A stretch of DNA of 64,000 nucleotides from Monocercomonoides exilis PA203. Its lineage: Eukaryota > Protista > Preaxostyla. The notes under the pieces are model-generated. The model had not been told where the DNA came from. It saw only the letters and a program-made list of their open reading frames with translations, and did not search any database. Shown here piece by piece: positions 5,326-40,658 of this stretch. The position numbers and the translations under genes are program-made. The stretch's first letter is position 1. Each line of letters starts with the position of its first letter. The stretch is from assembly GCA_001643675.2 (NCBI GenBank), contig LSRY02000012.1, forward strand, positions 248,001 through 312,000, in the 5' to 3' direction.

Positions 5326-7330
5326 ATGGAAACAAAACGCCACGCCTGGAAATTTTGCCAAGTATTTGGGGACCGAAATCTTGAAAATGTGCAAAAGGCT
5401 GATATTATATCAGCAATAGAGTTCGATCAGACTGGAGACTATATGGCAGCTGGTGACAACGTATGTTTCTTTTCCTGCAATCATTCTATATTCGATCATT
5501 TTGCATTTGAAATATATTACCGCTTTGCTATAGGGAGGAAGACTTGTTTTGTTTAATATTGCAAAGCAAAGTAAGTCGTCTTCTTCAAAAACAAAGGTTG
5601 AGTATAACTTTATAACAGAGTTTCAATCACATGAACCAGACTTCGGTATTGTTCTTGCGCTTATGCATAGCATTTATTTTTTTGTACTAATATTTTTTAG
5701 ACCACCTTAGAAGCTTAGAAATTGAAGAACGAATTAATGCAATAAAATTCCTTCCACAAACAACAAGCTCACATCTTCTATTAACAACAAATGATAAAAC
5801 CATCAAAGTTTGTTTAATGCTTGCTTTTTGAAAACGAGATAAATCTTGTGAATAATTATTAAAACAGTTGTGGAAAGTTACACCAACAACACCATTAACA
5901 GTTGTAAAGACTAACACAATCACTGATTCTATGGGCAGAATTCTACCGGGTACAACACCCGCTTCACTTCGCCTTCCGTCACTCTCTCGCGGTGAAACTA
6001 CATTACTGTCTACAACTCGAAAAATCTTCGGAAATGCACATACCTACCACATCAATTCTCTTTCTCTCTGTTCTGATCATGAACTTTTCTTATCCTCTGA
6101 CGATCTGCGAGTGAATTTATGGAATTTGGAGTATTCAGATGTCTGCTACAGTATGACTTTTATTGAGTTAACAATATTAAGAAAATATTATTAATTATTT
6201 GCAAATTCATTTGTTAGACGTTGTTGATATAAAACCAGATAACATTGACGATATTACTCAACTCATAACATGTTCATCAATGCCCATAGCGGCAACATCA
6301 GGAGTATCTTCTTTATTCCAATATTCCACGTCAAAAGGCATTACACGTATTTGCGATATGAGAAGAAAAGCACTTTCTGATCAACCTGCAATTGGTATGA
6401 AACATTCGATTCAACAAAAACTTAGAGAAGAAAATGACTTAAGTGAAGAATATGAAAAACGAAAAAACGGAAACAAAATTTCTATTTAATACATTTACAT
6501 GATTCATAATATTTTTATTAAAAATATTTATTGATACTCATCTATGCTATATTATTTTATTGTATGCTTATTCTTGAAGAACTTATTGATCCAACCGTCG
6601 CAGCAGCCACTGCAGCTTCAAGCTCAGATTCTATACCGATGATGGGCGCTCCTTCTGACATGCCTTATTTCATTTGCGATGCAAAATTCTCTCCTGATGG
6701 TCGTTTTGTGTTAACAAGGTGAGCATATCTATGCATTCATTTGATATATAATAATTCATCGATATTATTTTGCACTTGTTTTTTTTGCGTCTTTTCGCAT
6801 GTATTTTCTTGATTTGTGCTGATTTTTTATTTTGCTTCGCTGTTTTCTTTCGTTGCAATGCGAAATAAATATTCAGAGACTTCTATCATCTTCGCCTTTG
6901 GGATTTGAAGATGGCACGTCGCCCGCTCTTGGCAATACCTCTGCACGATGCGATCAAGAGCAGTCTGCTGAGTCATCTGGAGCAGCTGTCTCTGATGCAG
7001 GACGGCTCAGCGCTCGACAAATTCTCCGTTGACTTCTCGTCTGACTCGAGGTTCATGCTGACTGGCTCGTACAACAACCGCTTTTTGGTGTATGACACCA
7101 CGACAGGCAAGCAGGATGCAGCGATCGAGGCGTCTCGAATCCTCCCTGCAAAGAAGAAGACCAAAGCAGCAGCGAAAGGCGACTCGTCGCTGTATGCGTC
7201 AAACATCGCAGAGCCTCTGACGGCAGACACTGTCGATTTCTCGAGGAAGCTTGTGAAGGTTGCGTGGCACCCGCAGCAGAACATCCTGGCACTTGCTGCC
7301 TGCTCAAATTTGTATATCTATGCAGAGTAA
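5326..7330 (+). CDS. PPP2R2: PP2A regulatory subunit B55/PR55 (WD40), multi-exon
   Basis: Motifs [104 protein letters not shown]...SNLYIY-stop, joined by short GT-AG introns. Confidence 0.95.
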
Positions 7331-21600: not shown

Positions 21601-22085
21601 CTTGAATTGTCAGCGATGATCAAGGATGCATTGTTTTTTGATTGCAGTTTTTTGCAGTTGCAGATTGTGAAAGTTGAGTTCGTCAAAAAGAAAGAAGCAG
21701 CCATCATGAATTGCTGATTGTTTGGAATGTGTGAATGTTTTGCAGATTGTTTATCTTTGGAAGAGAAATCATTTTCATAAGAATTGCGATCAAAAGCGTG
21801 TTTTTCGATGTCTTCTTCTGGAAGTGAACAGGTACTTCTGGAAGCTTGAAATGGACTTGGTGATTCATTTGTTGTGTCATTTGATGTATGATGGTGATGA
21901 AAGAATAAATGAAGCTGGGATGAAGAAGTTTCTGTTTTTTGTTTGATTTCATTCGTGTTAATATGATTTGGGATAGGCTCGCAACTTTGAGCAGTTTCTC
22001 TACAACTCGTGTTTGGTTGGAATGATTGGATGTAAATGTGAATGACCAAGATTGATAACAAAACAAAAAAATGAACTACGTTCAT
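12630..22085 (-). CDS. Giant single-pass receptor-like protein: beta-helix (Pmp/pectin-lyase-like) ectodomain, TM, degenerate TKL/Tyr-kinase C-lobe
   Basis: Intronless 3151-aa ORF with an N-terminal hydrophobic signal, GGAI/GGGLF and FxxC/FxxN repeats, and five CGxxxxxCxT/S modules. TM WILIVCIVIVVVLLIALVIFVV-RWRK; kinase remnants LRWKAPE, SFSIGMMLWECLTLQIPF, GERP, CWSENYSERLS. Confidence 0.85.
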   Translation of the reverse strand: MNVVHFFVLLSILVIHIYIQSFQPNTSCRETAQSCEPIPNHINTNEIKQKTETSSSQLHLFFHHHHTSNDTTNESPSPFQASRSTCSLPEEDIEKHAFDRNSYENDFSSKDKQSAKHSHIPNNQQFMMAASFFLTNSTFTICNCKKLQSKNNASLIIADNSRVELVACSISLLTFSKVAPLHIRGGLIVARNISFIHKMDASLIPSLTTSPDHARQLKASLLMLESSFNSICVSSPPFIGNGCFEDVDISMCTFLNISSHFLCSSKHTSNHNQMSGMANCFVSDCTSPLYETIICASFGKGFFSSNTTFIRADNTLSNRNYTSNAGSFSEGEIEFINCNFTGCTAENGGAITVGGNSSLKINQCFFFECVSTYQEVFSYGGAIFIYGVDCNVNDSLFSNCHGTGKSLIGGGIGHINDGFTNINGCKFHNCSASYGGASAWYNGGSGSIYDSEMLNCVSNYNFAGTVFYRHNKQDIVISNCSISGGSAPLGAGGLDISDNDHNTSLLIQFCLFENNTVQKDTHAADIYLGKGYDADTAVNEIKHCFTLSNAPRHVVICARFAEECGDRGVAHDDWLPSPPSEIRISKDGSDINTCGNIGSECKTVEYGVTRWRSQLNQSILLFSENYIENYIEINSKHIEIIGVAANESKVMCLANSTTVDLFYVANGFLKVGNTSFVCVFNRTAIHAVSSGTLQLELCAFTKDLSSNLPSTQSLLQVDEGELNMRSVKMSGFAFAQGCAVAINDCKMSTLVNASFSNIVSNQNGGCMSVVCSEALEESCSISFDTCEFDTCCTQGDDTGGGGLFICLSAGFSCAVADTRFDHCTAAFEEGKNGKGGGLMMDLRDENSIFNISGTQFTSSNNAAFGKNAFVHSPNLNASILLPRFGFWQESDSPQLLMGSDKRVPNTIIPLEIFLKARGDFVFVSSTGSDNVCCGHPLYPCETLSYSFDVQASVKKKIKISQKIELKEKLALNEVGYDVGERNLPSTITVIGTGPIEGTGGLITTSVDCSFAAITFTLSSTSLAPFSSLFDVRDEELFMTDCALTISEDLESSEIIEYSFALVSEGSINFAHFLIPGMLCVSQPIISITGSHSSCEIDFLSVNKVTVKGNKGLIYAADSRLLTIHNSSIESCSMDESSLIEISSIQTLEAKNTSFLTITCSKGNGSCFDITTGNANERQLSIENCSFDGCAVAENGSGGGGLFCSLSSPRSLSITLCTFNGCEAPSDMLEGFGGGIFFDLVDSDAGFVVSDPSFATESPNKAKHGSDLFVCSPDLKASITMESLPFAAQCDHGSFNNLQGYYGEDHENAVPLVLLLEDVGQTLYASLSNGANTFVCGFSDYPCASLDYGMQRLAQINGKAITISTSTEIRNEMCLQNAEVKSASNSKMKISFLKAVSTLSGKVLTVSGNSSIEQAMLAIPSSFNNDVLSLIFLSSESNFSMVECLLSMQEGEVDQVSFQLFELCGGILKMDHCSLQSDCISHAPIGARANEDTPSDAITLKIMNSVIGSYPLICVIPSTNKHQKNDNANNNVLTLFGCSFEKITREDNDANCAILFSSLVSMDIECDQWNATDIRGTQSDEGGALKAVIGSTGSFKIKNSTFTKCCAESETKGKGGALFVDCSASDAFLFADITFEMCNAHAGKNLFVISSDLNLSITAERLAFAISDAEASNNLFIGSDSTKTDFDLLRFLIPFISSEICLSKNNGWDVSRCGSEGEPCMTMQYGQMHFPSSSDESDSALNKLVAMDEVLVDCEVDVTNMVVTSKNVENHSLLKFNPAINPKPGIEDVCSSTLASTGECSFLNLGICCSCSAEWHHSNLICSSGRNLAFDSCKFSGVIGETITYCVVVCLSGTCELSFCSFESMKCAHHIAMTSSLGSLSLTNTTTNNIELTGKSVIAAQQQQEACRANDGEGYTIQLKCCTLHSLQQSTPSDPSIVQCLTSKTITVSILNTSIKSCGSSASEKGGGVIMKLNEGGLLECCYSNLTGCFCSTTGRGGAMYLDCSAAETEELAPFKFVNSTFLENRAFRGRDLFVKCSKIDSQIGLAQFQLDFRPPFVKELAIWGCTDEHFENEEDLLLIVIVYQNEIVFVSSTAENNTDSRQCGAASGPCTSLNTGLNHVIPSVFSNLLIDKECAVSGEASLRDVTMKSMQQENEKGVIAMNAAIEKKSNHLLACSSRVAIEHLTFLFGNAFSSEHLCLLCVIDGNLSVTNALFTQEASSQNSDSLLNCSIIQLESGRLTINECCFASLHICSSCLTAIGGEYCSFSNTNITHVDAKRAMNLHNLTKLLIHQMHVAFCLFEDSSMILHDCRDCQIEKLQMNKVQSKANMIAFSSDRTDVKTSIRCYLLEFVNISVSAESLLFIACEDSSTEMSNLTFDGITLSNGCVVNAEFSSSKLILKQSLFSNITRNSVGPCCLSAESPSSQVAMEDCSFEKCKSASAKGSIISIAGLKQVEIASCTFDGANAARNTNENEEHLGDICQWNGSVVDMDKSSAMIKDTTIANASNGGLTANECNVTMLKGEMLNNNPKIEKYPSVRRNIICFGSAALNIGSLKGGDGARDNSSLWILNNGCKLEGLAAGRQSSFFIPTLESVEANDLGSWTELRFHGSLLLPCNLSYRLSITQGDASLLNVYPLETDQSISENEAHSSILSSIVSDLPDSAEVSVSILFGDLNSPSSTASFILKNRSVPKANGGERVVEGGKEEKFSWILIVCIVIVVVLLIALVIFVVRWRKQKRRTEELEVIVEDTVRKDPKAFEMVTMEMSPEAQWRRAEKEAEKSNEERIKKRVYEKSLGHSESSEHLLSESGSTEYILGRDSDKIPEWALEKVDEKEEEIRKRTPSPSISSTSTTDTSDTESTFVRSESLCPTTSSMSNLVDAMACSSPHEKLIVDLRDSLFMLLHGRNEKKEMAIGSLQQREQTAAQILFWVANLALHSFDEMDNPVQSLANLSPHVVLFSEHMVICIVMHSECSSDDSSDSSSISSTSTIITSTSDCSTANRNGRDSPPPSSAFEDDDDYRKECLRWKAPELMANRNAVATKKTVSFSIGMMLWECLTLQIPFGEYEAEIAARKIVNGERPNMGNADDSRLGQVMRSCWSENYSERLSLNELKREFIKLFPAGSVMLTVTDAITFESSSKGNETTTLSTTFN

Positions 22086-23088
22086 TGCAATTAAAAAAAT
22101 GTGAAGAAATATTAAGAACTTGGCAATGGACTTTTATTAGTCAAAAAAAAAAAATTTATGTACTAGGGTTATTTTTTTATTCGGATATTTTTTCATATGG
22201 GATCGAAAAAATTATAAAATTTTAATCTTATAATCGAATACTAATTTATGAACAAAAGAACATAATAATAAATATTGTTTATGGACTTTCTCTTGCTAAT
22301 TTTTCTTTATTTTTCTTATTTTCTTTATCCTCAGAACTATCAATAAAAAAAAAAGCAATTTTCGCTGAATTTTCGTTTTCTCCGATTTTTCTACATCAAA
22401 AAGTTATTTTCAACTATTTCTTGAAAATCTTCATTTCCTTTCATTCCTTCTTTCATATTCTTCATGTTCTTGGCTAATTATAACTTAACGAAGTCGCTCA
22501 AATTTTGTTTTTAATAGGATTTTTTTTCATAATAGTCAATAATGTGATAAATTTAAAGAAGTCAGCTCCGAAAAATTGAGCAATCTTTTGTTTTCAGAAA
22601 AATACATTTTTTTTTCCAAAAAATTCCATAATATTGGTTTTTTTGTTTTATTATTATTAAAAATTTTTCAAAATGGAACCTATTTTCAAATGGAATGGGG
22701 GAAAAAATGATATTGAAATAACTATGGTAAATGTTTTTTATCGGGGAACTCGAATTTTTCAAAATTTTTATTATTAACGGACATAAAATAGTATAAGAAT
22801 CTAAGCCTTTGTGACTTACTGACTTTTAATGATAAAAATTTCGATTCTGACTGACTTTTTCATTTTTTTGAGTCAAAGCAATATTTTTTTTATTTGGAAT
22901 ATATTTTATTCAGTTTGAAAATTTTTTCACTCATAATATTTTTTTGAATTTCAAATATCCAAATCATAACTTCATGGAAAAAAATTAATTTGAATATTTT
23001 GTTAATGATGGGAAATGACCAGATCAACAATTAGGGAATTTCCAAGTCAGTGACTTGTTGATCTTTTTGTGTCTCAGTCAAAAAAGTC

Positions 23089-26071
23089 ATGTCAGGGCCC
23101 ATCATTTTAAACAAGGATTCACTAATCAAAGAGTTTCAAGATGCACTAACAGATTCGAAAATTGTTTTATTGTTTTTTATCTTGCATTTTTTGTATAACA
23201 TTTTTTTATTAGGCTATGAGTTATTTGAGAAAACTCGATGAATTAAAAAAATACGGATGCAACTTTTTGAATCTCACTCTGATGGAACGAAATGAAAAAG
23301 GAGCAGGTTTGCTTGTGAATATCTTTTATTTTGATTTACGATAAAAATCATTCAAAGTTTACAAACATCCTGTTAAAGAAAATGAGTTTTTAACAAAAGT
23401 CACATTGGAAGTTGTTAACGAAAAATTATGGATATCTTACATCCCATCAAACGAATGCGGAGCGCCAGTTAGGGAATATCACAAACAATACCTTTGTCCA
23501 AATGCAAGAGGAGATGCAGTTTGCGGTGTCAGTGGAAGAAAAAATTATGCTGGAATCAAAAATCATCATTGTTCAATTTTACTAACACAAAATATCACAA
23601 GTTTCAAACAATTTTCTTCTGTGATTAAAAATCGTGATGATCCAACAAAAAAATTTGATAATTCAATTAACTACACAAGCACAAATTTGGAATTTCTATT
23701 TGCGCAAATTGTGAGTCATTGCAACATTTCCATAGCTTCTGCATCGTCGAAAGAATTTAACAATTTCATAACTGCCTTAATAAAAATTTCTCAAGAAAAT
23801 CCAGACAAACATCCCACAAAAATATTCCCATATTTAACTAGAAGAAAATTAAGCAGCTTGATTATTTTTCAAAGTGAAATCGCAAAAGAAAAGAGGGCGA
23901 AAGAATTATTCGGAAAATGCATTTGCGTAATGATGGATGGTGGAATAGTTGGAGGACAAAAATGTACCGTTGTTACAATTGCTCCTCTGTCACTAGAAAC
24001 TACGACTTTTTTTTGGAAAGTTTATCCTCCTTGTTTCAATGCTAGTCACTATAGAAAATTAGCCTGGATCATAATAAAAGAATTGGAATCATTACATACA
24101 AGTGTTAGGTGTTTCTGTTCAGATGGTTTAAAACCTCAGAAAAAAGCACTGGAAAACTTCTCAACATCACTTGAAGAATATGAAGAATCTTTGCTATCAA
24201 AAATTAAAGTTGCTCCATTTTTTATTTATTGTTCTAACCATCTTTTAAATTTAGTCATAACAAAAGCTTTCACTAAAATTGATTTTCTTAGACAAATATT
24301 GAATGATCTTACATATTTTGCAAAATATGCCCATTCTTCGGCAATCAGAAAGTTACTAAAGCAAAAATGTCCTTCATTTGTTCAAACGAGATGGCTTTGT
24401 TTGTACCCAATTTGCTCATTTATAAGGAAAAACTGCGAGGACATTTTAAAACATTCGTTGATTTCTTCAGATAAAGTGTTAAATTCAGTATTGATGGAAT
24501 TATTGTTATTTCCTATTCATAGGCTTCAACTTTTTTTGGAAAACGATCAAACAAAACTTGGTGAAATTTTCCCTATGATCCTTCAAACGATTGGAATTTT
24601 ATATGGAATCAAATCCTTCCAAAGATTCAGATCTTCAAATTGGCAAAATGCAATTACTAATATTCTTGTTCTTATGCATAACCATTTTTTATTTGGAAAA
24701 ACAGGTGAAATGATATCACTGGCACACGCTTTAACACCAGTTGGAATTCAAAAGTTCATTAGAAATGAATTTACAAATTCATTTATTGAAGCAAAACACG
24801 TAATAGAAGAATTGGATTCAAAAGGAGGAGCAGAACATCCTCTCCATTCAATCAGTGAGCATTCAAATTCGGAAAAAACAATTCTTCAACAAGGTCATAT
24901 TAATGAAGACAATAGATTAGTTCGAATGAGATATTCCTCGTTTACACAACAAAAGGAAATTTCATCACACTCAGATTTTTTCAACTCAACAAATTCTTCT
25001 TTTTCATTTTCATTGCAATCAAATATATCCAATTGTTCTTCTTCCAGTTTGGATAAAAATCAACTTAGTGATATTTCTTCTCCTTTTCTAATTAATACTT
25101 TCTCTCCAATTTCTATGACACATAATTTCTATTTATCAAATGATAGTTTCAATCTTGCTTTGGAAAGGTTTCATTCATCTGTTAGAGATGAACAGGTCAG
25201 CTTTTTCACAATGTCTCAGAACCTCAATTGCTTTGATGATATGTTTGAAGATAAGAAACTTGATGACGTCTGTGCAGAAATTATCAAACTCCTTCGAATT
25301 GCAGATACAGTCGAAAAATGTGAAACACCACAGCAAGAAGAACCAAAAACAATGGAGGAATTTGAAAACGAATCGGATGATTTTGAAGAAGACCCTCTTG
25401 GAATTTTGTTGGCAGAAAGAGATTTGAAAGATCCTGATTTTCAAGCAGCTAATATTTTTGATTCAGTCATGAGATCTCCATCTTCATCTTCATCATCTTC
25501 ATCATCATCATCTCCATCATTATCTTCGTCTTGTTCATCATATTTTTTAACATCATCATCAAGATCATCTGACTCATTTTCCGACACGAATGAATCTTCA
25601 AATGTTGCAATTGAATCGGAAGATGATGAAGTTGAATTGCTTTTTGCAAGCAAAGTTTTCGATATCATCTCACCATCTTCGACTGACAAAGAAGACGAAA
25701 TGTGCCTCAATATATCTTCATGCATCACCTCAGATTGGTCCAATAGGATGGAAAGAAGGTTTGAAATATTAATAAACTCAGTTTTATTTAAAGAAGATCA
25801 AAAGCTGAAAGAGTTGTGTCTGAAGATATACCAAAGTGAGATGAGTGCATCGCCAAGTTCTGTTGTGGAAGATAATGCTCAAATCTATTATGTAAATTTA
25901 TCTAAGAAAAGTTTCAATCACACCATATATTCGAATATTTGTTTTTCTTTTGTTTCATCACCGTGCAGCGAAGCAAGCTGTGAACGAATTTTCTCGAGGA
26001 TGAAAAGAATAACTGGAGACAACAGACACTCTCTTTCATTCAACACTCTCAACGCATTGCTTTTAATTTAG
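23089..26071 (+). CDS. hAT-family DDE transposase (3 exons: 23089-23163, 23213-23306, 23358-26071)
   Basis: VMMDGG (D1), FCSDG (D2), FIYCSNHLLNL (CxxH), VQTRWL, ALTP, and hATC motif SEASCERIFSRMKRITGDNRHSLS (E). Both introns are GT-AG and keep the frame. Confidence 0.92.
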
Positions 26072-26743
26072 TTTTTCTTTATTCATTTTTTGCAATTTTG
26101 TTCATCTAAGTATTTTTAGACACATTTCATTTAATGAAACTTTCAAATAAATCTCAATAAATAAGGAAAAAAAATACATTATCTTTTTCATAAGAACAAT
26201 TATGAAATGAACACAATAAATAGAAATAACAATAAAACTATTTTCTTTGAACAATCCACTTCAATTTTAATCTCCTCCTCCTCCTCCTCCTTTTTCTCTT
26301 TTCTCTTCTTCTTCTTCCGATGCGAAGAAGAAAAAGGAGAGCAAACGAAGCAGCACATCTTCACTGGGTGTGGATGCTAACTCCTTCGTATATTTAGCAA
26401 AAGCTGTTGATTTCTCCATTGTTTTCCTCACTTCTTCTCTTCTGACAATCGAAGCATTGTCCACACAGAAACATGCAGATGTTGCTGAAGTCAGCAGAAT
26501 TTACGTGGCTCTGCTGCCATTCGTGTTGTCCATTGCTAATTAATCAGAAGATGATGAAGTTTTGAATTCATCCTTTATGCAGATGTTTGATCAATCACAC
26601 AAAACTCTCAGATATTATGCCGTATGGTGTTTGAGTGGTTGTAGCAATAATAATAACTCTTCTCTTTCTCCTTCTCCTTCTTCTTCTTCCTCCTCTTCTT
26701 CTTTCTCCTCTTCTTCCTCTTCCTCTTCCTCTTTCTCCAACAA

Positions 26744-28925
26744 TCACCTCCTCCACCACAACTTCCCAGCCACTCGCACCGATCTCTTCGAAGCAGCAAC
26801 AGACTTGTCCTTCAAATTCATCTCTCTCTCTTTCAAGTCCTTTGTGAAATCATGTCTCAGCTTCGTATTCTGGTTCCTCTTCTCCCTCTCCTCTTTCCTT
26901 TTAGCAGCTTTCCTCGTCGCCCCTCCCCTTCTCCCTTGTGATGTTGCATTCAATGATGAGATTTCATCTTCTTCAAAACAGCCAGAGAGTCTAGTCATCA
27001 ACAAAGTGTTTGAATATCTCAAAACAATGGTCAATGTAGTGGTGGAAGATGCAGCTCAAGCTAATTCTTCCTCTTCTTCCTCATCTTCCCATGACAACTC
27101 CAATCCCCACCTCCCCCAGCTCCCTTCTATCTGCGCTGCCTCTTCCTCTCTCTCTCTCTCTCTCTTCCCTCTCTCTTCTTTCGTCCAGCTCCACATCTCC
27201 CACACTCTCCAGGGTTTTCTTCCTCCTCTCTTCACTTTGGCTGATATTCTTCCTTTTTGCAATGGCCTTATGCTTCTTTTCTTCCCCACCTCCATCGTTA
27301 ATAACTTGAAATTCCTTCCTCATTCTGTTTCAGAAAATGCGTTTTTAACTGATGCTGATGATGATGAAGCTAATTTGCCATACAAATATAAAAAACTTTT
27401 TTTTTCTCCGTCTGCTGAGCCGGCAAAGATGAACATGTTGATTCAAGTCAGCTCTCCTCTTTCTCTCTGCAACAGCTTCTTTACCTTCATCGATGTTAAA
27501 TCTGTTCTTTCTTTTTCTTCTCCTTCTAATTCCTTTTTGTCTTCTTCCTCCTCCTCCTCTTCTTCTTCTCACTCTTCTTCCTCTTCTTTTTCCTCCTCCT
27601 CTTCTTCTTCTAATTCTTCTTATTCTTTCCACTCAGCACAAAACAAACAACTTTCTTGCCCAACTTCTTCATCGAATTTGCCTTTTTCTTCAATTACTGT
27701 CAAATGATCAACTGATATTTTCTACTGCTCCACATCTTCAGTTATTTCAATTTGACTTTTCACTGAAGAAATACTCAAACACTCAAATTCTTTTCCTGCT
27801 GTAACATTCTTATTTCTCGCGTATTCCAATGTTGCACAACAGGCACGCAAAATGAAAGCTTTGTTCAGCATTTGTGAAAGGCTCCTCTCTGAAAAAATCT
27901 CTTTCCATTTCTCCGCCTTCACAAACCTCAGCCCACTCATCCCAAGCGCCTTTACAACCAGCAGCTCCATCGCGTCTTCCAGCTTCCCCTTGTTCTCTTT
28001 GATTCTCTCCACAAACTCTCTGTATGTTGTTGGATACACGCCTTTTGCCTCATTCCAATCGCCCTCCTCTCTTCCTCCATCTTCCTTTCCCTCTTTTTCT
28101 CCCTCTTTTTCTCCCTCTTTTTCTCCCTCTTTGCCTCCCCTTTCTCCTTCCTCTGCTTCTTCCCGCTCCTTCAGCACAACCAGCACAATCGCTGCTGGTG
28201 AGAGAGCCACATCCTCCATCCTCAGCCCCGCCACATCCAGACCCTTCTCCACAATCTCCCCCACTTCACACGCTGCAACCCCTCCCCACATCACTTCATC
28301 GTCCAGCTTCATATCCACATGCCTTGACTGAGGAGATAGCGACACCAGCCTCATTATTTCTGATGGCAGCAGCGAACGAACAAACAAATCGTTGATCGCT
28401 GTGAACTCATTCACATCTTCCTAAACTAAGATCAACTTGCTCCCCAACTTCTTTCTCACTGATGCTGCAAGTGAGTGGAGCGGCACCACCAGCGGAACTG
28501 AAAGCATCTCTGAAAGAACCACATCGTATGCACACACAACACCCCCATTCAGCACAGCCAGCTGTGAAGCGCCATATCCCTCGAAACGTCTGCAGCGCTC
28601 TCAGAAACGACTTCTTTTGATTAATATACTCCCCAGCTGCCTCTGGCACCACAATCCAAAGCCACTTCTCAATATCATCCATCTCTGCTGCAGACTAGTA
28701 TGACGCCACAACCACAGAGGCATCCGAAGGGTCAATTACAGGCTCAGATGAAGATGACAATGTTTTATCATCTCCTGCCTCCTTTTTATCTTCGCTTCTC
28801 CGCCTCCAGAATGGGAAAGTTGATAAAGAATACAAAAGATGCTGAACAAAGAGACTTCTGCTTCACATAGGCAGCCAAATGAATCTTCTTTGAGAAAAGT
28901 TATATAACATGTTGGCAGCTCCTTA
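26744..28925 (-). pseudogene. IQCH-like (ATP-grasp-like) gene fragment carried inside hAT-1
   Basis: Broken frames give DIEKWLWIVVPEA, VLNGGVVCAYDVVLSEMLSVPLV, KKLGSKLIL, RHVDMKLDDEVMWGGVAACEV and YPTTYREFV, in the same order as recalled IQCH motifs ([57 protein letters not shown]). Contains stops and frameshifts. The 3' boundary is uncertain. Confidence 0.65.
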
Positions 28926-30580
28926 TGAAATGCTAAGATAATATTTTCATTTGAAAAAAGATGTCGATTTGTTCAAAAAGCCGATCATTTTTGAGCTATG
29001 GAACAAGAAGGAGCTGAATTTCTTTGAACGATAAATTGAAACTAGCAGATGAAAAATGAAAATAAAAACAGATGGATTAGCGAAAACAATAAAGATTATT
29101 AAAGAAGATTGCGTCTCATAAAAGAGATATAAGTGCCATTTTGAATTGATAATAAAAGAGCATTTCTGCGGGAAAATGGACAAAACATTTAATTTTTTAA
29201 TCAAAAATTCTTTTATTGTTCCACATGCTTTTGTTTTTGAATGTTGTCCAACAACAATAAGCAATGAAATGTTGAATTTTTCTCAATCTTAAATATCATA
29301 AAAAAAAGTATTCCAAGATTAGCAGTTTTTTCAAATGTTACACAACAAAGAAGTTTGTTTAAAAGAAAGAAAGCATTTAAAAAATCAGAATGAATTATCA
29401 AACGGATGAAATGAAAACAATGAAATAAAAACAAATTGTCAGTTTGTACAAAATGGCTAGAAATCAACAGTTTTAAGAAGTAAAAAGACAAAAATGTTAA
29501 AATTGAATATGATATAATGCTAATTTTGAATTCATATCACAGTATTAGCGAAGAGAAATCTTCTTTATATATTTTTCTCTCTATATTATGGTAATGGAAT
29601 GATCATAATCTGTTGATCTTTTTTGATCAATTATCAATAAGTCAGTGACTGACTTGAAACAAAATTTCATCTTAAGTCACAAAGGCTTATAAGAATCATT
29701 TATTTATTAATTAGAATTTGAGATCATCATATTGTTTGATAAATAATAATCAAGGATTCTTTATATTTATGGGAAAGATCAATAAAATTTCATGTAATTT
29801 TTGAGTGCTGACCCTAAAAAGAAGAAACGGAACAAACCCGAAACCCAAGATTTGTTACGTTAACCCTAGAACCTAAACCAATCTGTTAATGGAGAGATTA
29901 TTTTAGAATTTTAACCCAAATTATTAAAAAAATACTGGGTCAGATCAAAATGTTTTATTTGAAAAAAAGAAATTATGATGATTGATGATCTCAAATTTTT
30001 ATTAATTTATAAATGATTCTTACACAATATTATTTCCATTTTTTATGCAGATTTTGAAAAATTCATGTTCCACTATCATCTCCTTTTACCATAACTATTT
30101 TATATAGAAAGTTGCTTGTGAAAAAGATCATATCAAAATTGTTTATCATCCTCAAACGATGATGCATCACCTCCATTTACAAATTCCATGTTTCGTCGTT
30201 ATCCCTTGTTATATTCATAATAGTTAATTATTCATCTTTTGTATCATTTATCTTCTCATCTCGTTTTAAAAACTGTTATTTTTGAATAATTTAAAAAAGA
30301 GATATTTTTATATTTGTATAATTATTTATTGAATTTCAAACTATTTGTGCACAAGTTTGATCACACTCAAAAATTTAAATATTTTTGTTTAAATTTGGGA
30401 CGAAATATTTTGGTTTATGAATTTTGTTCCATTCAACTCAAACAAATATTTTTCTCAATTTTAGAATCTTTCTGTATTTATTTGACATGGGAATGAAAGA
30501 CTTATAATGATAATGTTGGAGAAAAAGTTTGGAACAAATCGTTGTTTCTTTCATAAATGAAAAAATTTTTATCCCATTTA

Positions 30581-30941
30581 CAGATATCGCACAAAATACC
30601 GGACAAGATCGATTTCACAATAACCACAAGAGGAATAATTCTGACTATTTTCCTCAAAATATATCTCACCAATCCAAACTCACATGACATACAAGAATTT
30701 CAGGACAGCTTCATTTGTGCTCAGTAAAAATTAATTTTTGAGATCTCGGAGAAAAATGTATTTGTGTTTCTCCGAGGTTTTAATATTAAAATTTTTCTGA
30801 ACATAAACAAGGAAGTTTTTTAAAGTTTTGTTTTTCAAATGAGTTTGGATTGGTGAGATATATTTTGTGGAAAATTTCCAGAATTATTCCTCTTGTGGTT
30901 ATTGTGAAATCGATCTTGTCCGGTATTTTGTGCGATATCTG
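30581..30941. mobile_element. 361-bp fully palindromic MITE flanked by TA (Tc1/mariner-like)
   Basis: TA|cagatatcgcacaaaataccggacaagatcgatttcacaataaccacaagaggaataattctg... is inverted at ...cttgtccggtattttgtgcgatatctg|TA. Outer ~100 bp nearly perfect; imperfect pairing continues to a central ctcggagaaa-loop-tttctccgag. Confidence 0.88.
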
Positions 30942-31346
30942 TATATTCACTAAACACATTATTGAATATCAAATATTCGACACCAAACGCATTAAATATA
31001 TATTTGTAAACAGTCTTGTGTTAAAATTTTTGTATTTTTTGAACTTTTCAATGACCACGTTAAGTTATCATATACTTTGTTCTTCTATTCATCGAGATTA
31101 TCTTGGTCATTTGAAATCTTTACATGATATTCAAATTGATTATTTAGTTTTTTTTATGAAAACAATAATCACTCATCAAATACAATAATTTCTTGTGATT
31201 TACTATCAAATGAGAAAAGTATTTTCATTTATAACAATGAGAAGAAGTTTTTTGAGATGTTGTTTTCTTATAATGATTCTTTCCTGATTGTCATTGTGAA
31301 ACATTTCTCACATAAAAAATCAATTAATTAATTAGAATGTGTTAAT

Positions 31347-31355
31347 AAAAAAAAA

Positions 31356-31400
<45 letters not shown>
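31347..31400 (+). repeat. Poly(A) tract (~53 nt)
   Basis: A-run interrupted once by GT, directly after aat. Confidence 0.8.
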
Positions 31401-31401
<1 letters not shown>

Positions 31402-31768
31402 GATTACATTGCACCGAGCAATAAAAATAATTTCTACAAAAAGATTCGGAAAAGTTTAACTTATTGGGTCCGAAAATTTTCATAGAAATCATCTTGAATT
31501 ATTAAAAAAAAATGATTCATTTAGGCCTCTGCGACTCACTTTTTTTGAGTGCAATTTGTCGGTCGAGAAATTATTCATTTGTCGAAAATTTTGAAATGAT
31601 TGTTTTTTACCTAATTTTGCAATTCATGAATATATCTGACTTTCCTTTTTTTCACTGTTTTTCTTTTTCTTTTTTCTTTTTCTTTTCTTTTTTCTTTTTC
31701 TTTTCTTTTTTTTAATGTTATTACCATAATAATAATATATTATGTATTTTGAAAACAAATAAGAAATT

Positions 31769-32884
31769 CATGAAAAAACTGGAGAAGATAGATGAAAGGA
31801 ATCAAAAAGATTGTTATACAATATTAAATGCAATGGTTTGGAATGGAATTTTTTTTGATATCTTTGCTGCTGATGTGGATTTGATTCAAAGTGATAATTT
31901 TAACGTTGTTATTTAAAATGCTAGAAGAAATTTTTCTCATGAATAAGAATTGTTCTATTCATCATCATCTTCTTCTTCCTCTTCCATTTCACCAGTTCCT
32001 TTGCTTCCGCCCGCTTCAACATGGCCATCTTCCATTGACACTCAATTTCCATTTCGTACCACTTCATCAAAGCATCTCACATTACACTCCACAACTCCAT
32101 CTTTCATATCGCAAGTGCCTTCTATCACTCTCTATCTCTCTCTCTCTCTTTCTCTTTCTCTCTCTCTCTCTCTCTCATCTCCAGTCCGCAGATCCCTCTT
32201 CTCCCAGCAGGTGCGCCGGATGATTCTTCTCCTCCGCTTTATGCGTGTTTTGGTGCAAGGCTCCATCCTCAGCCGCAAATTAGCCTCAAATTCGTCACCT
32301 CTTCTGTCTTCTGACGAACCCCGCTTAGTCACTGCCTCTCATTCGTCTATTCCCTTTTTGAGACCTCTGGCTGCAATTACACAGGAAAATAATAATTATA
32401 AAAGTTATGGTAATTATTTAAATTTTGCCGGCAGAAAAATTGTTTCTGGAAGGATGAAAAGATAAAGTTCGGGGAAATATTGGATGATTGAGCCACAATT
32501 CAAAGGAGTTTATGAAGGAGGCAATGAATTCAGATCAGCTTCCTCAAATAATACTGAAATCACTTCACTTTCATCACAATCAATGTCATCATCATCATCA
32601 TCCTCATCGTCATCATCATCATCATCTTTTTCTTCTTCCTCTTCCTCCTTCTCCGGCTCCACCCCCTTCTCCACCCTTCTCAACCACTTCACCCGCTCTA
32701 CTGGGATGTTGCTGTGGGGCGACTCATTTTTCATTAGACATTTTGCAACTGGCTTGTATTTGACAGTTGTTCCATGTTATTTGGATGAATGGGCGAATGG
32801 AAGGAAAAGAAAAGGAGAGAGAAAGAAGGAGGAAGAAAAGGAAGAGAAAGAGAGAGAGAAAGAGAAAGAGAAAGAGAAAGAGAA

Positions 32885-32927
<43 letters not shown>

Positions 32928-32934
32928 AAAAGAA

Positions 32935-32973
<39 letters not shown>

Positions 32974-33150
32974 GAAAGAGAAAGAAGGAAAAGAAAAAGA
33001 GAGTTATTTAGAGAAGAATCGCAATGTTATTTACAGAGTGCGTCTGATGCCTTTACCCTCATCATCATCATCATCACCATCATCTTCTTCTTCTTCCATC
33101 CCATTTGACAGCTCCTGGTTCCTCTGGCGTTTCCGCCCTCTTCAATCAGG
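31769..33150 (+). pseudogene. IP3 receptor/ryanodine receptor MIR-domain-like fragment carried inside hAT-2
   Basis: KYWMIEPQFKGVYEGG...LLWGDSFFIRHFATGLYLTV resembles the IP3R MIR motif LWEVE...GG...WNSLFRFKHLATGHYL. In-frame stops (e.g. TAA 32463-32465), a frameshift in a (GAGAAA)n tract, and poly-Ser inserts. Confidence 0.55.
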
Positions 33151-36100
33151 AGACATTTCATCATCTTCTTCTTCTTCCTTATCCTCTTCCTCTTCTTCCT
33201 CCTCCTCTTCTTCCTCCTCCTCTTCTTCCTCCTCCTCATCCTCTTCCTCCTCTTCCTCTTCTTCCTTGTCTGATTTATCTCTTTCATCTGATTCCTCTTT
33301 GTCTTCCTCTTCTGCTCCTTCTGTAAATCATTCTTCTTCAATTCCAAATGAAATGGAGTTTTTGAATGACTTTTCTTCTTCTTCTTCTTCTTCATTCACA
33401 TCTCCTCTTCCTTCTCTCAACAAGATTTCTAACAGTTCTTTCTCTTTCTTCCTTTCTCTTTCTCTTTTTCTTTTTTTATTTCTCCCACGCAATTCTTCCA
33501 ACTCTCCTCTTCCTCCTCCTCTTCTTCCTCAAATCTTCCTTTCTCTTCATCTCAAACATTTCCTCAGCAAAATCTGAAGAAAATTAACTTTCGTATGCTT
33601 TACGATCGTTTTTGAAAAGAATTCTATTTCATTTTCATCATTTTCTTCAAAACAATAAAGAAAATGAAAAAAAAAATTTTTTTTCTTTTTTTTGTATTGT
33701 TTTCTGTGTGAAAGAAGGAGAAGAAAAAAAAATATAAGTTGAAATTACTAAAAATAAAATTTTCCAAACTCCTTTTTCGATTTTTTTTCATTTATTATTT
33801 CATCATCATCTTTTTCCTCTTCTTCTTCCATTTGTTTCTCTTTTTCTCACAGTTGTGCTTATTTCAAGCAGCATCAATGTGTCGAAGTGCATTTTTGAAT
33901 AGCCGAAAAGACGTTGTGAGAAGAGGTTAACTCGCTTTTTGCTGAAATGACTGATCATGCACTGAAACTTCTGCATATTTCCCTTATTATTCTAAGGCGA
34001 CAAAAAAGTGTGTTGTTATTTTTCTTATTTTATTTATTCGATTTTAAAACAAAAAAGCTGTCATATGGTTCGCTGCAAGTGTTCTTTGAGCAAACAGATC
34101 ATAGCGTTCAACGTTTGTTGTTTTGCTAATTTGCGTCATTGTTCAAAAAATGACGGCTTCTTTTGTTTTTTCAGCCAATTTCCTTCCAATGCAAGAACCA
34201 GAACTAACTTTCACATTAGTTTTACAAAAGATGGTTGTAATGCTCATGAATGTATCACTTTGGTATATGATCATCGATGAGCGGAATGTGTCGTTGTCAC
34301 AGATGTGCGTCATATCGCCAGCGCATTGAGTGATTTTGAAGCAGGCGATGAAGAAAGAATAGCTTGAGCAAAAAGACTTTATTGAAGAAGAGCCGGCAGA
34401 ACTGGATTCTTCGAGAAAGAAAAAGAAAGTGAAAGATCCAAAAGGAAATGAAAGCGGAGCTGAGAACATTGAAGATTCAGAAGAAGACAGAAATCCAAAA
34501 GGAAAAAGTGACAAGTTTTCATCAAAAAGTTAAGTGAATGACAAAAGAACTGGGAAAATGAAGACGAGCCAGTTGAAAGGGAAAAAAACAGAGAAGAAAG
34601 AGAAAATACCACGCCAAAGCAAAAAACATCTAAAGTTCTGATTTTGGAGCGGACATTGAATCTGATGAATTCTGTTCTGATAGAATCAGAAGAATAAGAA
34701 ATGAAGGAGAAGCAGAAGATAATCGAAATCTTTACAAATAAAAAGATTCAATAGCAGAAAACAGCAAACGGAAATGCAGATAAGAAAGCAACTCAAAAGA
34801 AGAAGAAGAAGAAGAGCGGGCAGATGAAAAGAACAAATTCACATTTGAAGCGAAAGAAATCAAAGAGGAAGAGAGGTTCTGATGAAGGAAGCGACGAAGA
34901 TGATGAAGACGACATGAACATTACAAAAAAGAAGAGTGTAACGAAGAAGAAGAAGAAGAAGAAGAAGAAGAAGAGGGAAAGGGAAAAGGAGTGGGAGAAG
35001 AAGAAGAGGAAGATGTTGACGAAGGATAGGAAGAAGAAGAGGAAGAAGAAGAATTCTTTTCGAATGAGCTTTAATTCGATGACTTCCGCGAAAGTTTTCA
35101 TTTGATTGGCTTGCAAAATGCTTCACAATCGTCATCATCGTCATCATCATCATCACCACCATCATCATCACCATCATCATCTTATTCTTATTCCACACAA
35201 ACTTATTTCTTTTTCGTCTTTGTTGAAAAAGTCTTATTCTGCTTCAATATTTTCCGATTTTTTGTGATCAATATTCTGTATCTTTTGTTTATTCTGTTTA
35301 TTCTGTTATTTCTACTAAATCCATCTCTTTGCCTTTTCATCCTTGTTGCTATTTTATACAAAAAACGTTTAACTCTTTTATAATCAGATTCGCATGAAAA
35401 GCAATCCCCATTTCTTCATTGAGTGAATATTCATTCAAAGAAACATATGCCGCCACATCATTTTCTTCTCCCCTCCCGTTCATTTATGAAAAACGCCTTC
35501 AGCTGGTAAAGCTCAGCACTCTTCAGTTTATACGATGTCAGGCAAACGAGTGCTTTTGCAGTATCAATCTCACTCTTTCCTCCGGAGCTCCTTCAAATTC
35601 GACTCTTCAACATGTGAAGTTATTGTTCCAACATTATTCTCATCGCGGTCTAAATGCATGAATGTTCATTTACAACTGTAATCACTTCACCATCTGCGTT
35701 CATTCCAGTTAAAGCAGCCTTATTGCTCACAGATCTTTAATATCAAAATAAAACTTTTTTCAAAAACGAATTTGAGAATTATTGAGTTATATATATATTT
35801 TTTAGCTTTAAGTTTTTCAGAAAGAGAAATTCCTATTGAATAGTTTTAAGGAATGAGATTTTTTTTGAAAAAGAAGGATGAAGATGATGATGGTTTTATC
35901 GTGTGAATAACTTATGAAAAATGTCTGCTTTGAAAGTGCCTTAGAACTTTTCGATATTTGTTCCATTATGTTTTGAAAATTTGAGATGATGAATAAGGAA
36001 TAAGATTTGTTACGCTTGCCTTTTTTCGAGTTATGAGAAAAATAAATAAAACCAACAACTTTCAGAATATGAATTGCTTGTTCTTTGAAAAATTAAAGAA

Positions 36101-36805
36101 TATCAATCAACAGAATGAATCAACATTTGAAATGAATAAATAGAAATTGAGCGGATTCATTTTGCAAAAAAAAAAAAAAAAACTGAAACGAGTTTGTTCA
36201 AGAATGCATTGCCAACAAGAACAATTGCTGGATTTTCAATTCAAGTCTGTTTAACAATAAAGCATTCAATCTTGTATCAAGATAACGAACAAAACACATT
36301 CAATTTTTTATTATCGGTTGTGTATCATTAAATACTGAATAATACTTTGAAATTTGAGTTGATAAAATCATTTCTGTTCGTATGCTTGGACATTTAAATA
36401 TTGAATCACTTCAAAAAAACCTATAAGGTTAATCATATTGCAAACAATAAAATCTCAAGGTCAATCACATTCTAAGCGATTTTAAACCTCAAAAAAATAA
36501 AGCAAACATATCTTTATTTGATGTGAACTTCAATATTCAAAATAAATAAAAGAATTACGAGTTTATCGGTTTCTGAAAAGCCAAAATAATGTGAGATGGA
36601 TTTATATAATAAAAGCTCTTGGAGATATTGAAATGTTTCAAGTGTTTGTTATCAAAAATCGTTTATCATTCTGGAATTGCTTTGTTGAATTTCCTGTCAA
36701 TAATGAAAAACAAAACTGAATCTCGAAAAAGAAAATTATATTTAACAAAAAATAAACAGTTGCAAACCTGTTGATTATTCTGTTGTTATTGAAGAAATGA
36801 CTGAT

Positions 36806-39800
36806 TCACAACAGCAACAAATTGTTCAGAGTTTCCAATGACAAAGAATGACGTTTGTCACCAACAATTCTTCTAATTCTGGAGAATGCTCTCTCGCATG
36901 ATGCCTCGCTGCAGGGCGAAGCAACTAAGGCAAAACAAATGTTTGAATAAATATGAGTGATGAGACTTGATTTGCCAATTTCGGTGTAATAAACAAATGG
37001 ATCGTCTTGTGTTATTGCTTGCCTTCTATCCAACAAAAATGAAGTAAATAACGCCTCTATTTGCGTTTGAAGATCACGACTTTTATTTGAAAGCACTTGT
37101 TTGACGTAACCTTCAAATCCGCTCTTCAAACGCAAAAACCAATCGTTAAAAATGACTTTTTGGATATCCTGTAGAATTTGTAATCTTTGTTCGTGATCGC
37201 TGATGTTTGAGTAAGAAATTCTAGCATTTGATCCAAGATCTATAACATCTTCGTCTTCACTAAAGATTAACGTTTGATCATTTTCCTTATCCATATCTTC
37301 TTCCATATCTTTTTCATTCAATAAGAGATTATCCTCTTGATCACTTGCTGAGCGCGTGGTTATCGACTTATCAATAAAGCTTCTTTTTTTTTCGATAAAT
37401 TCGGAAGTTTTGAATTCATCATCTTCTTCTAATTCCTCAGCCTCTTTCAATCCAAATGTTTCTTCGAACAAGTCATTTGAATCTTCGTCTTCGCAGTCGT
37501 CGTCATCGTCTTGATTTGTAACATCAAATTCTTTATATTCGCTCCTTTTTTGCAATAATTCAATGTAATGAAGAATTTGAAAATAGTGATATGAAAAGTC
37601 TTTATTCGAAGATAACTGCTCTTGTTCCAAACTTTTTCCTTGAAGCAAAAATGAAACCGTTGATAACGTGTGCTCATCATTTATTTTTCTTTTTTCGTAC
37701 TGATAAAGTGCATCATGAAATCCTTCAACAGTCAATGACGAAAACCCTGGAGGTTCTAAGAGATCAAAAAACTTTGATTGTTTATCGGAAAAATAAATAT
37801 TTTCTTCTCTCGTTTTTGATTCTTTCGGTGAACAATCACAAGCCGTTTGAAACAGTTTGTTGATTGAATTCGATGAATAATCTTTTTGAATTGATGGTTC
37901 ATGTTCACAGATTGGAGAAGCAGAAGAAGAAGAACATATTGAAGATGACTGAAAAACTGAATCGAAGGATGATGAAGATGATGATTGATCACTTATATTT
38001 GAGTGTTTTTGGTTTAATGATGTTGGGTGCAACAAAGAATCTGAATTTCCTTTATTTGATATTTTATTCAATTCAATAAATTCTGATGAATACGAATTAA
38101 TGAATAAACTTTGTTGGTATTGTTTAGTTCCAATGGGAGTGAGAGAAAAAGCCAAGGCAAACATATTTCCTCTTTGACCTGATAAAGTGTAATTGAATAG
38201 ATTAATAATAATATTGCACAGGCCTCTTTGCCATTTTTCTTCTGAAAAACATTTCAAATCTAGCATCCAATAGAACTGAGCAAATGCTTTGAGCAGAAGA
38301 GGAAAGACATTTCCAAGTTTTGTTAACTCATTTTCAAATTGCAGTTGTAACGTTTGAAGAGGCAGTAAAAGCAGTTCAAACTTTGAAACTTCAATTAACT
38401 GGATATCTTTCAGAATGTCCGTGAATAAGTCGTTGTCTTTGTTTTTAAATATGAAATTGCAAATATTGAAAATGCAAAGCCATCTTGTTTGAACGAACGC
38501 TGGGCAGATTGGGATTGACGGGTTCTTAACAGCTGCTGCTCTTGATGATCTTGAAAATTGAATTACACTTTCTTTCAGTTGCTCAAAAAATGGATCACTT
38601 TCAAGAAAGTGAGAAAGAACCAAATTGACGATGTGATTGCAACAGTAAATAAAAAATGGGGGTACGAAAACACTTTGGGTTGTCTCCTTTCTTGTTGAAC
38701 AAATATTTGATAATTTTTCCATTGCTAACCTCTGAGGAAGTAATCCATCAGTACAAAAACAACGGATTTCTGATGAAACAGCTTTGATCTCCTCCGATAA
38801 TTCAACTGCCAGTTCATAATAATCGCTTGTTGTTGAACAAGATTTTTTCAGTGACCAGAACATTGATTTTTCTTTGAAGTCTAAAGGGATAACTGTAACA
38901 ACTGTGTATTTTTTCTTTGAAACAACACCTCCATCGATCATCACTCCGACCATCGTATTTGCAATCTTTTCATTTCTTTCCTTCTTTTTCCTTATTCCTT
39001 CCTGTTTCATGAATGCTGCAAGTTTCCGACATGTTAAATGAGGGAAAATCATATTTGGTGTTAGTGTTGGATTTTGTTGCGATTTTTGAATTAAATTTCT
39101 AATGAAGGAATTGAATTCAACCGAATATGAAGACAAAAACGCGATGTTGCAATGACTGATCAATCTTAAAAATTGCTCTAATAATCCCCCGAATTGATGA
39201 TGTTGGGTTGACATGATTGAATATGTTGTTTGCTCCGAAGATTGCTGAGCTGTTCGATGATTGATAAAAGAAAGCATTGTTGATTTATTCAGTAATGAAC
39301 ATTTATGATCAGATATTTTCTTTGATCCTTTTCTTGCAGAAAAGCCACAGTCAATTCCAGATTTGCTATTGACGCATAAATAATGATGATGGCCATCTTT
39401 TTTCAGAGATCCATCTCTTAAAACAGGTGTGTATGCAATCCAAATACTTCCTTCACTTTCCACGAAATGCACATTTCCGATTTCTTCTCCACTTTTGTTG
39501 GGGTGAAGATAATCTTTGAATAGGTTAAAATAGAAAAAACAGAAATATAAATTATGCACACAATTTCCATTTATTGTGACTTTTGACAAAACAAGATTAA
39601 CAAAGGAACAATTTGCATTTTTTAACTCTTCACATTTCTTCGTAAAAACAGAAGGCTATTTTTCATGAAAATAGAAAAATAAAGAATTCACATTTAAAAA
39701 AGAGTTTTAAATGAAAATGACACATTAATTTTTGTTTTCAGAGAGATTTTCAGATCGATAGGAAGTGTGGAAGTGACTGCTTCTGGATCATCATCTTTCA

Positions 39801-39822
39801 AAGAATCTGAGAAATTCGACAT
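36806..39822 (-). CDS. hAT-family DDE transposase (3 exons: 39822-39724, 39655-39562, 39513-36806)
   Basis: VMIDGG, FCTDG, FIYCCNHIVNL, VQTRWL, SLTP, SEASCERAFSRIRRIVGDKRHSLS. Clearly paralogous to the hAT-1 transposase, with introns at equivalent positions and phases. Confidence 0.92.
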
Positions 39823-40658
39823 AGCGACAACTCGACTGATCTATGTCACTCGACTGATCTCGACAAAGATCTGTCGATACCCCATAAAAAATGTCTCTAA
39901 ATTTTTTTTGAATTATTATTTATTAATCAGTTAATAACACCAGAATATTTTAATAAATGAAAAAATTGAATGACTATTTGAAAAATTGAATTTATTTCTC
40001 GTTTTTTTTATCAAAAAAATGATCAAAAAAAAAAGTTGTATTGTCGGTCGACTTGTCGAATGGTTCAAAAAATGTCGGTCTGTCGCAGAGGCCTAGATTC
40101 ATTGTTGAAAATTCGTTAAAAAAATGTGTTTATTAAGTTTCAACAATCAACAAATGAGTTGTGAATTTCAGTTTCATTACCAAAAATTAAACTATAATTT
40201 TCAAATATTTAAAAAAACATAAAAATTTTAATTCAAAAACCAACGGATTTTCTTCTAAATTTTTCTTTCATCAAAAAATCTTCATTTAAATTGTTGTTAT
40301 TAACAGAATCTGTAGATCTTTCATCATCTTTGAAGTTTTCTTTTCATTATCCATAAAAAATATTGAATGGATCTGTCCAACCTATTGAGTGATAATGCCT
40401 TTGAAATAATGTTCTGATTGGATTTTTCAATAAAAATCATAATTTCTCAAAACAAAAAATATCATTCGATGAATGACGATATTTGAATGTGTCAAATTTG
40501 GTGAAATATTGATTATAATTCACAGTTTAAATCGGGACCCAATATGTTACATCTTACCAAAGATTCAACATGACTGTCAATGATATCCACTCAAAAAAAT
40601 TACGAAGAAATTATTAATATGTGCGATTTGATCATATAATATTTTTTACTTCAAAATC

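Follow-up and report, generated by a model that had tools for sequence, protein, structure and literature searches.

Two neighboring transposable elements in the genome of Monocercomonoides exilis, to our knowledge the only known eukaryote without mitochondria, are most probably hAT cut-and-paste transposons that combine an apparently intact transposase of ~960 amino acids (aa) with captured fragments of host genes, that is, products of transduplication. Both lie within a stretch of 64,000 nucleotides (nt), contig 6:248001–312000, that we refer to as the window; positions given without a contig are counted from its first letter. Genome searches covered the 82.3-Mb, 101-contig assembly. Element 1 (22802–29689; 6888 bp) carries its transposase on the plus strand, and element 2 (31522–40095; 8574 bp) carries its own on the minus strand. 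The two belong to separate sub-lineages of a large and very divergent hAT clade that is particular to M. exilis and metagenomic relatives.

Element ends and further copies in the genome

The ends of both elements and the duplications that flank them were read directly from the sequence. Element 1 is bounded by a perfect 17-bp terminal inverted repeat (TIR), TAAGCCTTTGTGACTTA (22802–22818 on the plus strand at the left and 29673–29689 at the right), and by a perfect 8-bp target-site duplication (TSD), TAAGAATC (22794–22801 and 29690–29697). Element 2 has a perfect 14-bp TIR, TAGGCCTCTGCGAC (31522–31535 and 40082–40095), and a perfect 8-bp TSD, GATTCATT (31514–31521 and 40096–40103). The genome contains 205 occurrences of a degenerate end motif, TARGCCTYTGYGAC, compared with two of its reversed control. 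This excess, together with the recovery of further copies bounded by TIRs and TSDs, indicates that the element ends are not due to chance. Facing pairs of the motif, among those listed, bound elements of 3.3–13 kb.

A preliminary description of the window had reported two elements of 6888 and 8574 bp with perfect TIRs and 8-bp TSDs, which the direct reading and the motif counts bear out, and had proposed a genome search with the ends for TSD-flanked pairs. Genome searches recovered at least eight further full copies of the element 1 family, each with both TIRs, and the elements of the family span 4.7–14.7 kb. Each of seven is flanked by its own perfect 8-bp TSD, and the TSD of the copy on contig 43 matches at seven of eight positions. 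We considered a common GAATC insertion motif and rejected it, because the TSDs of the eight other family members share no motif.

The genome also contains deletion derivatives of the element 1 family that lack most of the transposase, as well as transposase-less elements of ~3.3–5.6 kb with element 2-type ends. One deletion derivative of the element 1 family has itself received an insertion, a 3.26-kb element (contig 7:1620415–1623669) that lacks a transposase and has element 2-type ends; the duplication of this inserted element, CGGAGATG, is shifted by 2 nt on one side.

Transposase genes

The long stop-to-stop frames comprise 908 codons in element 1 (23345–26071, plus strand) and 949 codons in element 2 (39655–36806, minus strand), and neither has an in-frame ATG ahead of the conserved N-terminus. 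Each transposase gene probably has two short GT..AG introns near its 5′ end, of 49 and 51 nt in element 1 and of 68 and 48 nt in element 2, as suggested by the GT..AG ends, the reading frame, and the length-variable alignment. The second short exon is recognizably conserved between the two elements, and in alignments of the element 1 family the first intron varies in length while the exons are conserved. The resulting gene models encode 960 aa in element 1 (23089–26071, plus strand; exons 23089–23163, 23213–23306, and 23358–26071) and 966 aa in element 2 (36806–39822, minus strand; exons 39822–39724, 39655–39562, and 39513–36806). Their start codons, at 23089 and 39822, lie 287 and 273 nt from the respective element ends. 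For the joined exon models, length and frame alone were counted; homology searches and structure prediction were performed with the long exon. An uninterrupted transposase of ~950–980 aa, starting ~270–290 bp from one end, had been described for each element; its size and start agree with our models, which replace the uninterrupted frame with one carrying two predicted introns.

Across their N-terminal halves, the long frames of elements 1 and 2 are 35% identical. At least 60 loci in the genome match the transposase, many of them intact. The ratio of nonsynonymous to synonymous substitution rates (dN/dS) between copies ranges from 0.13 to 0.5, indicating purifying selection on the transposase.

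Assignment to the hAT superfamily

Conserved motifs and a predicted fold support the assignment of both transposases to the hAT enzymes. With motif residues of the element 1 protein numbered from window position 23405, D178, D240, C276xxH279, R329W330, E856/E860, and R861 are invariant or nearly so across 67 relatives, as seen in alignments first with a third lineage and a metagenomic homolog and then with 63 more. Among solved structures, Hermes was the best match to a four-sequence profile (E = 2.5e-4), and the CxxH...RW and SER.FS blocks of the profile align with the same blocks of Hermes (residues ~459–505 of Hermes in the case of SER.FS). An AlphaFold model built on the 67-sequence alignment had a mean predicted local distance difference test (pLDDT) score of 75.6, rising above 90 in the core. 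When this model was compared with the PDB using Foldseek, the top 12 matches were all Hermes (best E = 5.7e-11; template-modeling score by target ~0.55), and the next families, ISCth4 and the P element, followed at E ~1e-3. Of 48 relatives that are more distant, 13 match the Pfam domain Dimer_Tnp_hAT (PF05699) at E ≤ 0.001. The earlier assignment to hAT, made from the 8-bp TSDs and the CxxH and S.ER.FS motifs, agrees with the motif conservation, the Hermes profile match, and the fold.

An N-terminal BED finger is common, but not universal, in hAT transposases. Where this finger would be expected, the M. exilis proteins have a conserved set of residues, C31, C40, H54, and C56 (Cx8Cx13HxC), and ~250 residues of the transposase are predicted to be disordered. 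hAT TIRs terminate in a consensus of the YARNG type; the TIRs found here (14–17 bp), which begin with TAAGC or TAGGC, agree with this consensus at four of five positions. The lineage is scarce in databases: a word search of 5.8 billion proteins returned a single homolog and an exhaustive hidden Markov model search returned 695, and the closest relatives sampled are metagenomic proteins.

Origin of the internal DNA

Downstream (3′) of the transposases lie 3.6 kb in element 1 and 5.3 kb in element 2 that are rich in microsatellites and contain decayed coding DNA, and that the preliminary description took for host-like sequence. Backbone accounts for ~0.8 kb of this supposed cargo in element 1 and at least 0.65 kb in element 2; what stands of the description are two blocks that match giant open reading frames (ORFs) and a piece of an IQCH-like gene. 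Transduplication is recognized by an internal segment that is homologous to a gene elsewhere, and such homologs were found here in the giant frames on contigs 12 and 39 and in the IQCH-like genes on contig 25. Sequence comparisons show a host derivation for one block per element and identify the third block as an IQCH-like gene fragment.

The backbone of the element 1 family consists of element positions 1–3464 and 6320–6888, and the DNA between them is a mosaic that differs among copies. The 3′ flank of the transposase (26072–26265, plus strand; element positions 3271–3464) belongs to this backbone; seven of the other eight full copies contain it, and the sister copy on contig 17 has part of it. 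The last 569 bp of the element, the 3′ subterminal region with the right TIR (29121–29689, plus strand), are also backbone; they show the lowest divergence and are found in the eight other full copies at 82%–99% identity.

Within the mosaic, the first captured block (26304–27620, ~1.3 kb, plus strand; open frame 26544–27704) has a single homolog outside the family, at contig 39:582871–583833, inside a frame of 5,845 codons. The two are 87%–88% identical as DNA and 89% identical as protein over residues 42–359. A second part of this frame is found at a distance of 1.6 kb, and the putative source as a whole spans contig 39:582871–585834. These 1.6 kb are kept in the copies on contigs 9 and 17 and in an 8.6-kb copy on contig 8, which makes element 1 an internal-deletion derivative of a form of ~8.4 kb. 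The contig 39-derived fragment is itself present in the contig 9 and contig 17 sisters and in the 8.6-kb contig 8 copy.

The second block of element 1 (27638–28870, ~1.2 kb) lies on the minus strand, antisense to the transposase, and is a decayed fragment of an IQCH-like ATP-grasp gene (PF24923) with frames at 27725–28420 and 28410–28694. Its minus-strand peptide is 60%–75% identical to at least 185 loci in the genome, and annotated M. exilis homologs of the peptide carry the start of the Pfam domain ATP-grasp_IQCH. A genome scan with the ATP-grasp_IQCH model gave at least 96 matches, mostly partial; only three, all of them on contig 25, fell within frames at least 750 codons long (1553, 758, and 980 codons). 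The codon periodicity of substitutions in the block is weak, consistent with decay.

Comparison of copies shows that the IQCH-like piece has been patched by exchange (gene conversion) with other copies. Element 1 diverges from the contig 9 copy by 16%–30% at 28482–28781, compared with 0%–2% in the remainder of the IQCH block and the 3′ region. In this interval the copy on contig 9 matches the one on contig 17, which makes element 1 the recipient of the conversion. A different patch, at 27582–28481, sets the contig 17 copy apart from element 1 and the contig 9 copy. Patchy conversion of this kind makes identities over whole blocks appear lower than those of the backbone.

Two side observations concern this repeat. 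A second decayed IQCH-like fragment lies elsewhere in the window (61790–62430; PF24923 positions 1–88, with two stops); it is 68% identical to the copy in element 1, and no recognizable TIR pair surrounds it within the window. In the annotation, dozens of short models named "uncharacterized protein MONOS_..." (130–400 aa) are IQCH-like repeat fragments, and these are probable annotation artifacts, not genes.

In element 2, the 3′ terminal backbone with its 14-bp TIR (31522–32121, minus strand; ~600–655 bp) recurs at 77%–87% identity in more than 20 other elements. At the opposite end (39823–40095, minus strand), which comprises the 5′ subterminal region and the right TIR, the terminal 263 bp recur at 66%–92% identity in more than 30 related elements. 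The captured block (32122–33216, 1.1 kb) is on the plus strand, antisense to the transposase, with an open frame at 32466–33008, and as DNA it is 91%/85% identical to its putative source, contig 12:988984–990021. Only four places in the genome match the corresponding peptide: element 2 itself, its sister on contig 17 (93%), a contig 12 frame of 5,968 codons (88%), and a paralog of 6,296 codons (57%). Given an old paralog at 57% and an intact giant frame, capture appears to have proceeded from host to element. The remaining internal DNA comprises a family-wide block (33437–35012) that is 81%–86% identical in at least 12 loci, several of them inside TIR pairs, and that is common to many of the transposase-less ~3.3–5.6-kb elements with the same ends, followed by a sub-lineage block before the transposase stop codon (35013–36805) that is found only in the sisters on contig 17 (94%) and contig 18 (81%–83%).

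Searches of the cargo for other content were negative: Pfam gave nothing significant on the cargo frames, and a look-up of both captured peptides in the ESM Atlas gave no usable match. Apart from the IQCH piece, tblastx found no second gene shared by the 3′ regions of the two elements, or by these and the third lineage. The single shared architecture proposed for the two elements therefore extends to the position of the cargo, 3′ of the transposase, and not to any common cargo or second gene.

Movement, age, and dispensability of the cargo

Copies on contigs 6, 9, 17, and 8 contain the same fragments and have different TSDs, indicating that the cargo moves with the element. This observation, together with the dN/dS values of the transposase, upholds the earlier proposal of a lineage that keeps its transposase while shuttling host fragments. 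That such elements also gave rise to the scattered pseudogene debris in other parts of the window, as the preliminary description further suggested, is a conjecture. Element 1 and its contig 9 sister have different TSDs and are ~99% identical, differing by 0.2%–2% in the 5′ region, most of the cargo, and the 3′ end; the synonymous divergence (dS) between their transposases is 0.015. Both values indicate that element 1 was active recently. The nearest sister of element 2 is only ~92%–94% identical, and recent activity, which had been proposed for both elements, is borne out for element 1 alone.

Two sequences without the captured fragments indicate that the cargo is dispensable. One is a compact 4.68-kb copy on contig 8, whose 908-codon frame is intact and whose ~0.66 kb of internal DNA has no match among the cargo blocks of element 1. 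It is 96%–98% identical to its 8.6-kb sister on the same contig, from which it differs by a deletion bounded on both sides by GAG/GAA microsatellites. The other is a metagenomic relative encoding a transposase of 1004 aa (on a contig of ENA ERZ1672045), in which the end TAAGCCTTTGTTACC follows 518 bp after the stop codon (stretch positions 4010–4024). This end is nearly the same as the TIR of element 1, which indicates that the end motif is conserved across the clade beyond the M. exilis genome.

Discussion

Several explanations other than capture were considered for the long internal regions. That the extra DNA consists mainly of later, nested insertions of mobile elements with their own ends and TSDs is unlikely, because each of the blocks derived from contigs 12 and 39 matches, besides the family copies, a single intact giant frame and no more than one or two weaker sequences, a copy number that is not transposon-like. 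The borders of the blocks lie in microsatellites and not at TIRs, and a pattern scan of the loci examined found no exact family end motif at internal borders, where TSDs were not systematically searched. Nesting itself does occur, as in the contig 7 locus described above, and other features would also suit it: ~6 kb of additional DNA is present in the contig 43 copy, the orientation of some internal blocks differs from copy to copy, and the IQCH-like piece belongs to a repeat with at least 185 copies, whose borders are sharp and common to them. A 3′ region that is an intrinsic functional part of the element, whether a second gene or a long cis-acting region for transposition or regulation, might account for why the extra DNA is always 3′ of the transposase, why the paired elements listed are all at least 3.2 kb long, and why the block at 33437–35012 is common to many transposase-less relatives. 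We nevertheless hold this to be very unlikely, as the 3′ regions of element 1, element 2, and the third lineage have no protein-level similarity except for the IQCH fragment, frames are disrupted differently among sister copies, and the 4.68-kb copy and the metagenomic relative do without the extra 3′ DNA. Chimeric joins are a conceivable hazard in an assembly based on Oxford Nanopore Technologies reads and rich in low-complexity sequence (PMC8767320). They can hardly be credited as the cause here, since independent loci on contigs 9, 17, and 8 all show backbone and cargo in identical order, and each of these loci is bounded by TIRs and a TSD of its own.

A number of observations weigh against our interpretation of the elements as hAT transposons with captured host-gene fragments. 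The Dimer_Tnp_hAT domain scores 20 and 19.2 bits on the two proteins, against a cut-off of 21.4, and a Pfam search of both transposases for the zf-BED zinc finger gave no match. For the putative donor loci on contigs 12 and 39, the comparison covered the matching frames. The IQCH-like fragment is itself a high-copy repeat and may have entered with another mobile unit and not straight from a gene. Finally, ~3.4 kb of element 2 (33437–36805) and several hundred base pairs of element 1 were not traced to a host gene.

Taking the elements as hAT transposons that captured host sequence, we infer present-day activity, splicing, and a mechanism of capture as follows. Membership in the family implies transposition by a hAT DDE enzyme, here with an RNase-H-like DDE core that is predicted to be split by an insertion domain made up entirely of helices and by extended disordered stretches rich in serine and acidic residues. 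The transposase would bind the subterminal regions, which are conserved, cleave the element at its TARGCC... ends, and integrate it through an 8-bp staggered cut. Past the transposase stop codon and ahead of the 3′ subterminal region, each element carries DNA that is dispensable for transposition. Fragments of two giant ORFs and of an IQCH-like gene were acquired in ancestors of today's copies, probably when repair of the double-strand gap that excision leaves switched to another template. Such a mechanism is consistent with the clustering of breakpoints just 3′ of the transposase, the deletions at microsatellites, the microsatellite borders of the blocks, and the conversion patches, which show ectopic template use. 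The captured fragments then rode along in later transpositions, and they are now decaying, being deleted between purine-rich microsatellites, and swapping patches with paralogous copies by ectopic gene conversion.

Elements 1 and 2 resemble Hermes, Ac, and hobo in their 8-bp TSDs, short TIRs, DDE RNase-H core with CxxH and RW motifs, helical insertion domain, and putative C-terminal SER.FS dimerization block. They differ from these in having Cx8Cx13HxC in place of the BED finger, ~250 disordered residues, and TARGCC ends, and the transposases are only ~16% identical to that of Hermes. Closer parallels to the cargo come from Dothideomycete fungi, in which transposase-bearing hAT elements carry and amplify a captured host gene (PMC6710886); hAT elements with histone H3 have been described in Pseudocercospora fijiensis (~9.5 kb) and Pyrenophora tritici-repentis (PMC6710886, PMC3538342). 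Like the M. exilis elements, these fungal elements bear a transposase, measure ~7–9.5 kb, have TIRs and 8-bp TSDs, and contain a host gene copy acquired by transduplication. In contrast to the whole small housekeeping gene of the fungal elements, the cargo in M. exilis consists of fragments of giant ORFs and of an ATP-grasp gene; its sub-lineages differ in cargo, there are ~2–10 copies per family, the host is a metamonad, and the cargo decays by ordinary mutation, deletion, and conversion, not by repeat-induced point mutation (RIP).

Pack-TYPE elements (Pack-MULE, Pack-CACTA, and Pack-hAT) share with the M. exilis elements the presence of gene fragments between TIRs, their mobilization as a unit, and the use of several donors. 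They are, by definition, non-autonomous (PMC8903248, PMC5861414), and non-autonomous Pack-hATs have been documented in maize (PMC8903248). The label "Pack" that the preliminary description gave to elements 1 and 2 is therefore inappropriate, as both retain an apparently intact transposase under purifying selection. The transposase-less 3.3–5.6-kb elements of M. exilis would fit the definition better, if their internal DNA is host-derived. Gene capture by transposase-bearing hAT elements is already known; what is new here is the metamonad host, the divergence of the clade, the giant-ORF donors, and the evident conversion.

These elements extend hAT gene capture with a retained transposase beyond plants and fungi, and they add a hAT lineage that branches deeply, has been poorly sampled, and has an N-terminus that is not of the BED type. 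Repeats make up 46% of the M. exilis genome, with unclassified repeats amounting to 35% of the genome, and the word hAT is absent from the paper describing it (PMC8767320); part of this large unclassified fraction now gains a concrete identity. Many short "uncharacterized protein" models in M. exilis appear to be gene fragments carried by transposons and should not be counted as genes. A bolder proposal, which we regard as doubtful, is that the hAT clade, with at least 60 transposase loci and ~100 TIR-bounded elements (none of those listed shorter than 3 kb), is a main engine of the 35% of unclassified repeats, having repeatedly copied pieces of giant genes and of the IQCH-like gene, spread them to hundreds of sites, and converted patches back. 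If true, transposase-bearing carriers would actively remodel host gene families and might also make antisense RNAs against their donors.

Genomic setting of the elements

Elements 1 and 2 lie in a single intergenic region and are arranged tail to tail, with their cargo ends facing each other across a gap of only 1.8 kb (29690–31521). Within this gap, an inverted repeat (30549–30973) has 152-nt arms that are 84% complementary, a 121-nt spacer, and no TARGCC ends. On the other side of element 1, an ORF of 3151 codons (12630–22085, minus strand) ends ~0.7 kb from the element. By blastx, neither this ORF nor the other ORFs of the window showed similarity to the cargo of either element, and an origin of the cargo from them was ruled out. 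The ORF encodes a C-terminal Tyr/Ser-Thr kinase domain (Pfam E = 2.3e-10) and probably belongs to the large kinase family reported in the genome paper.

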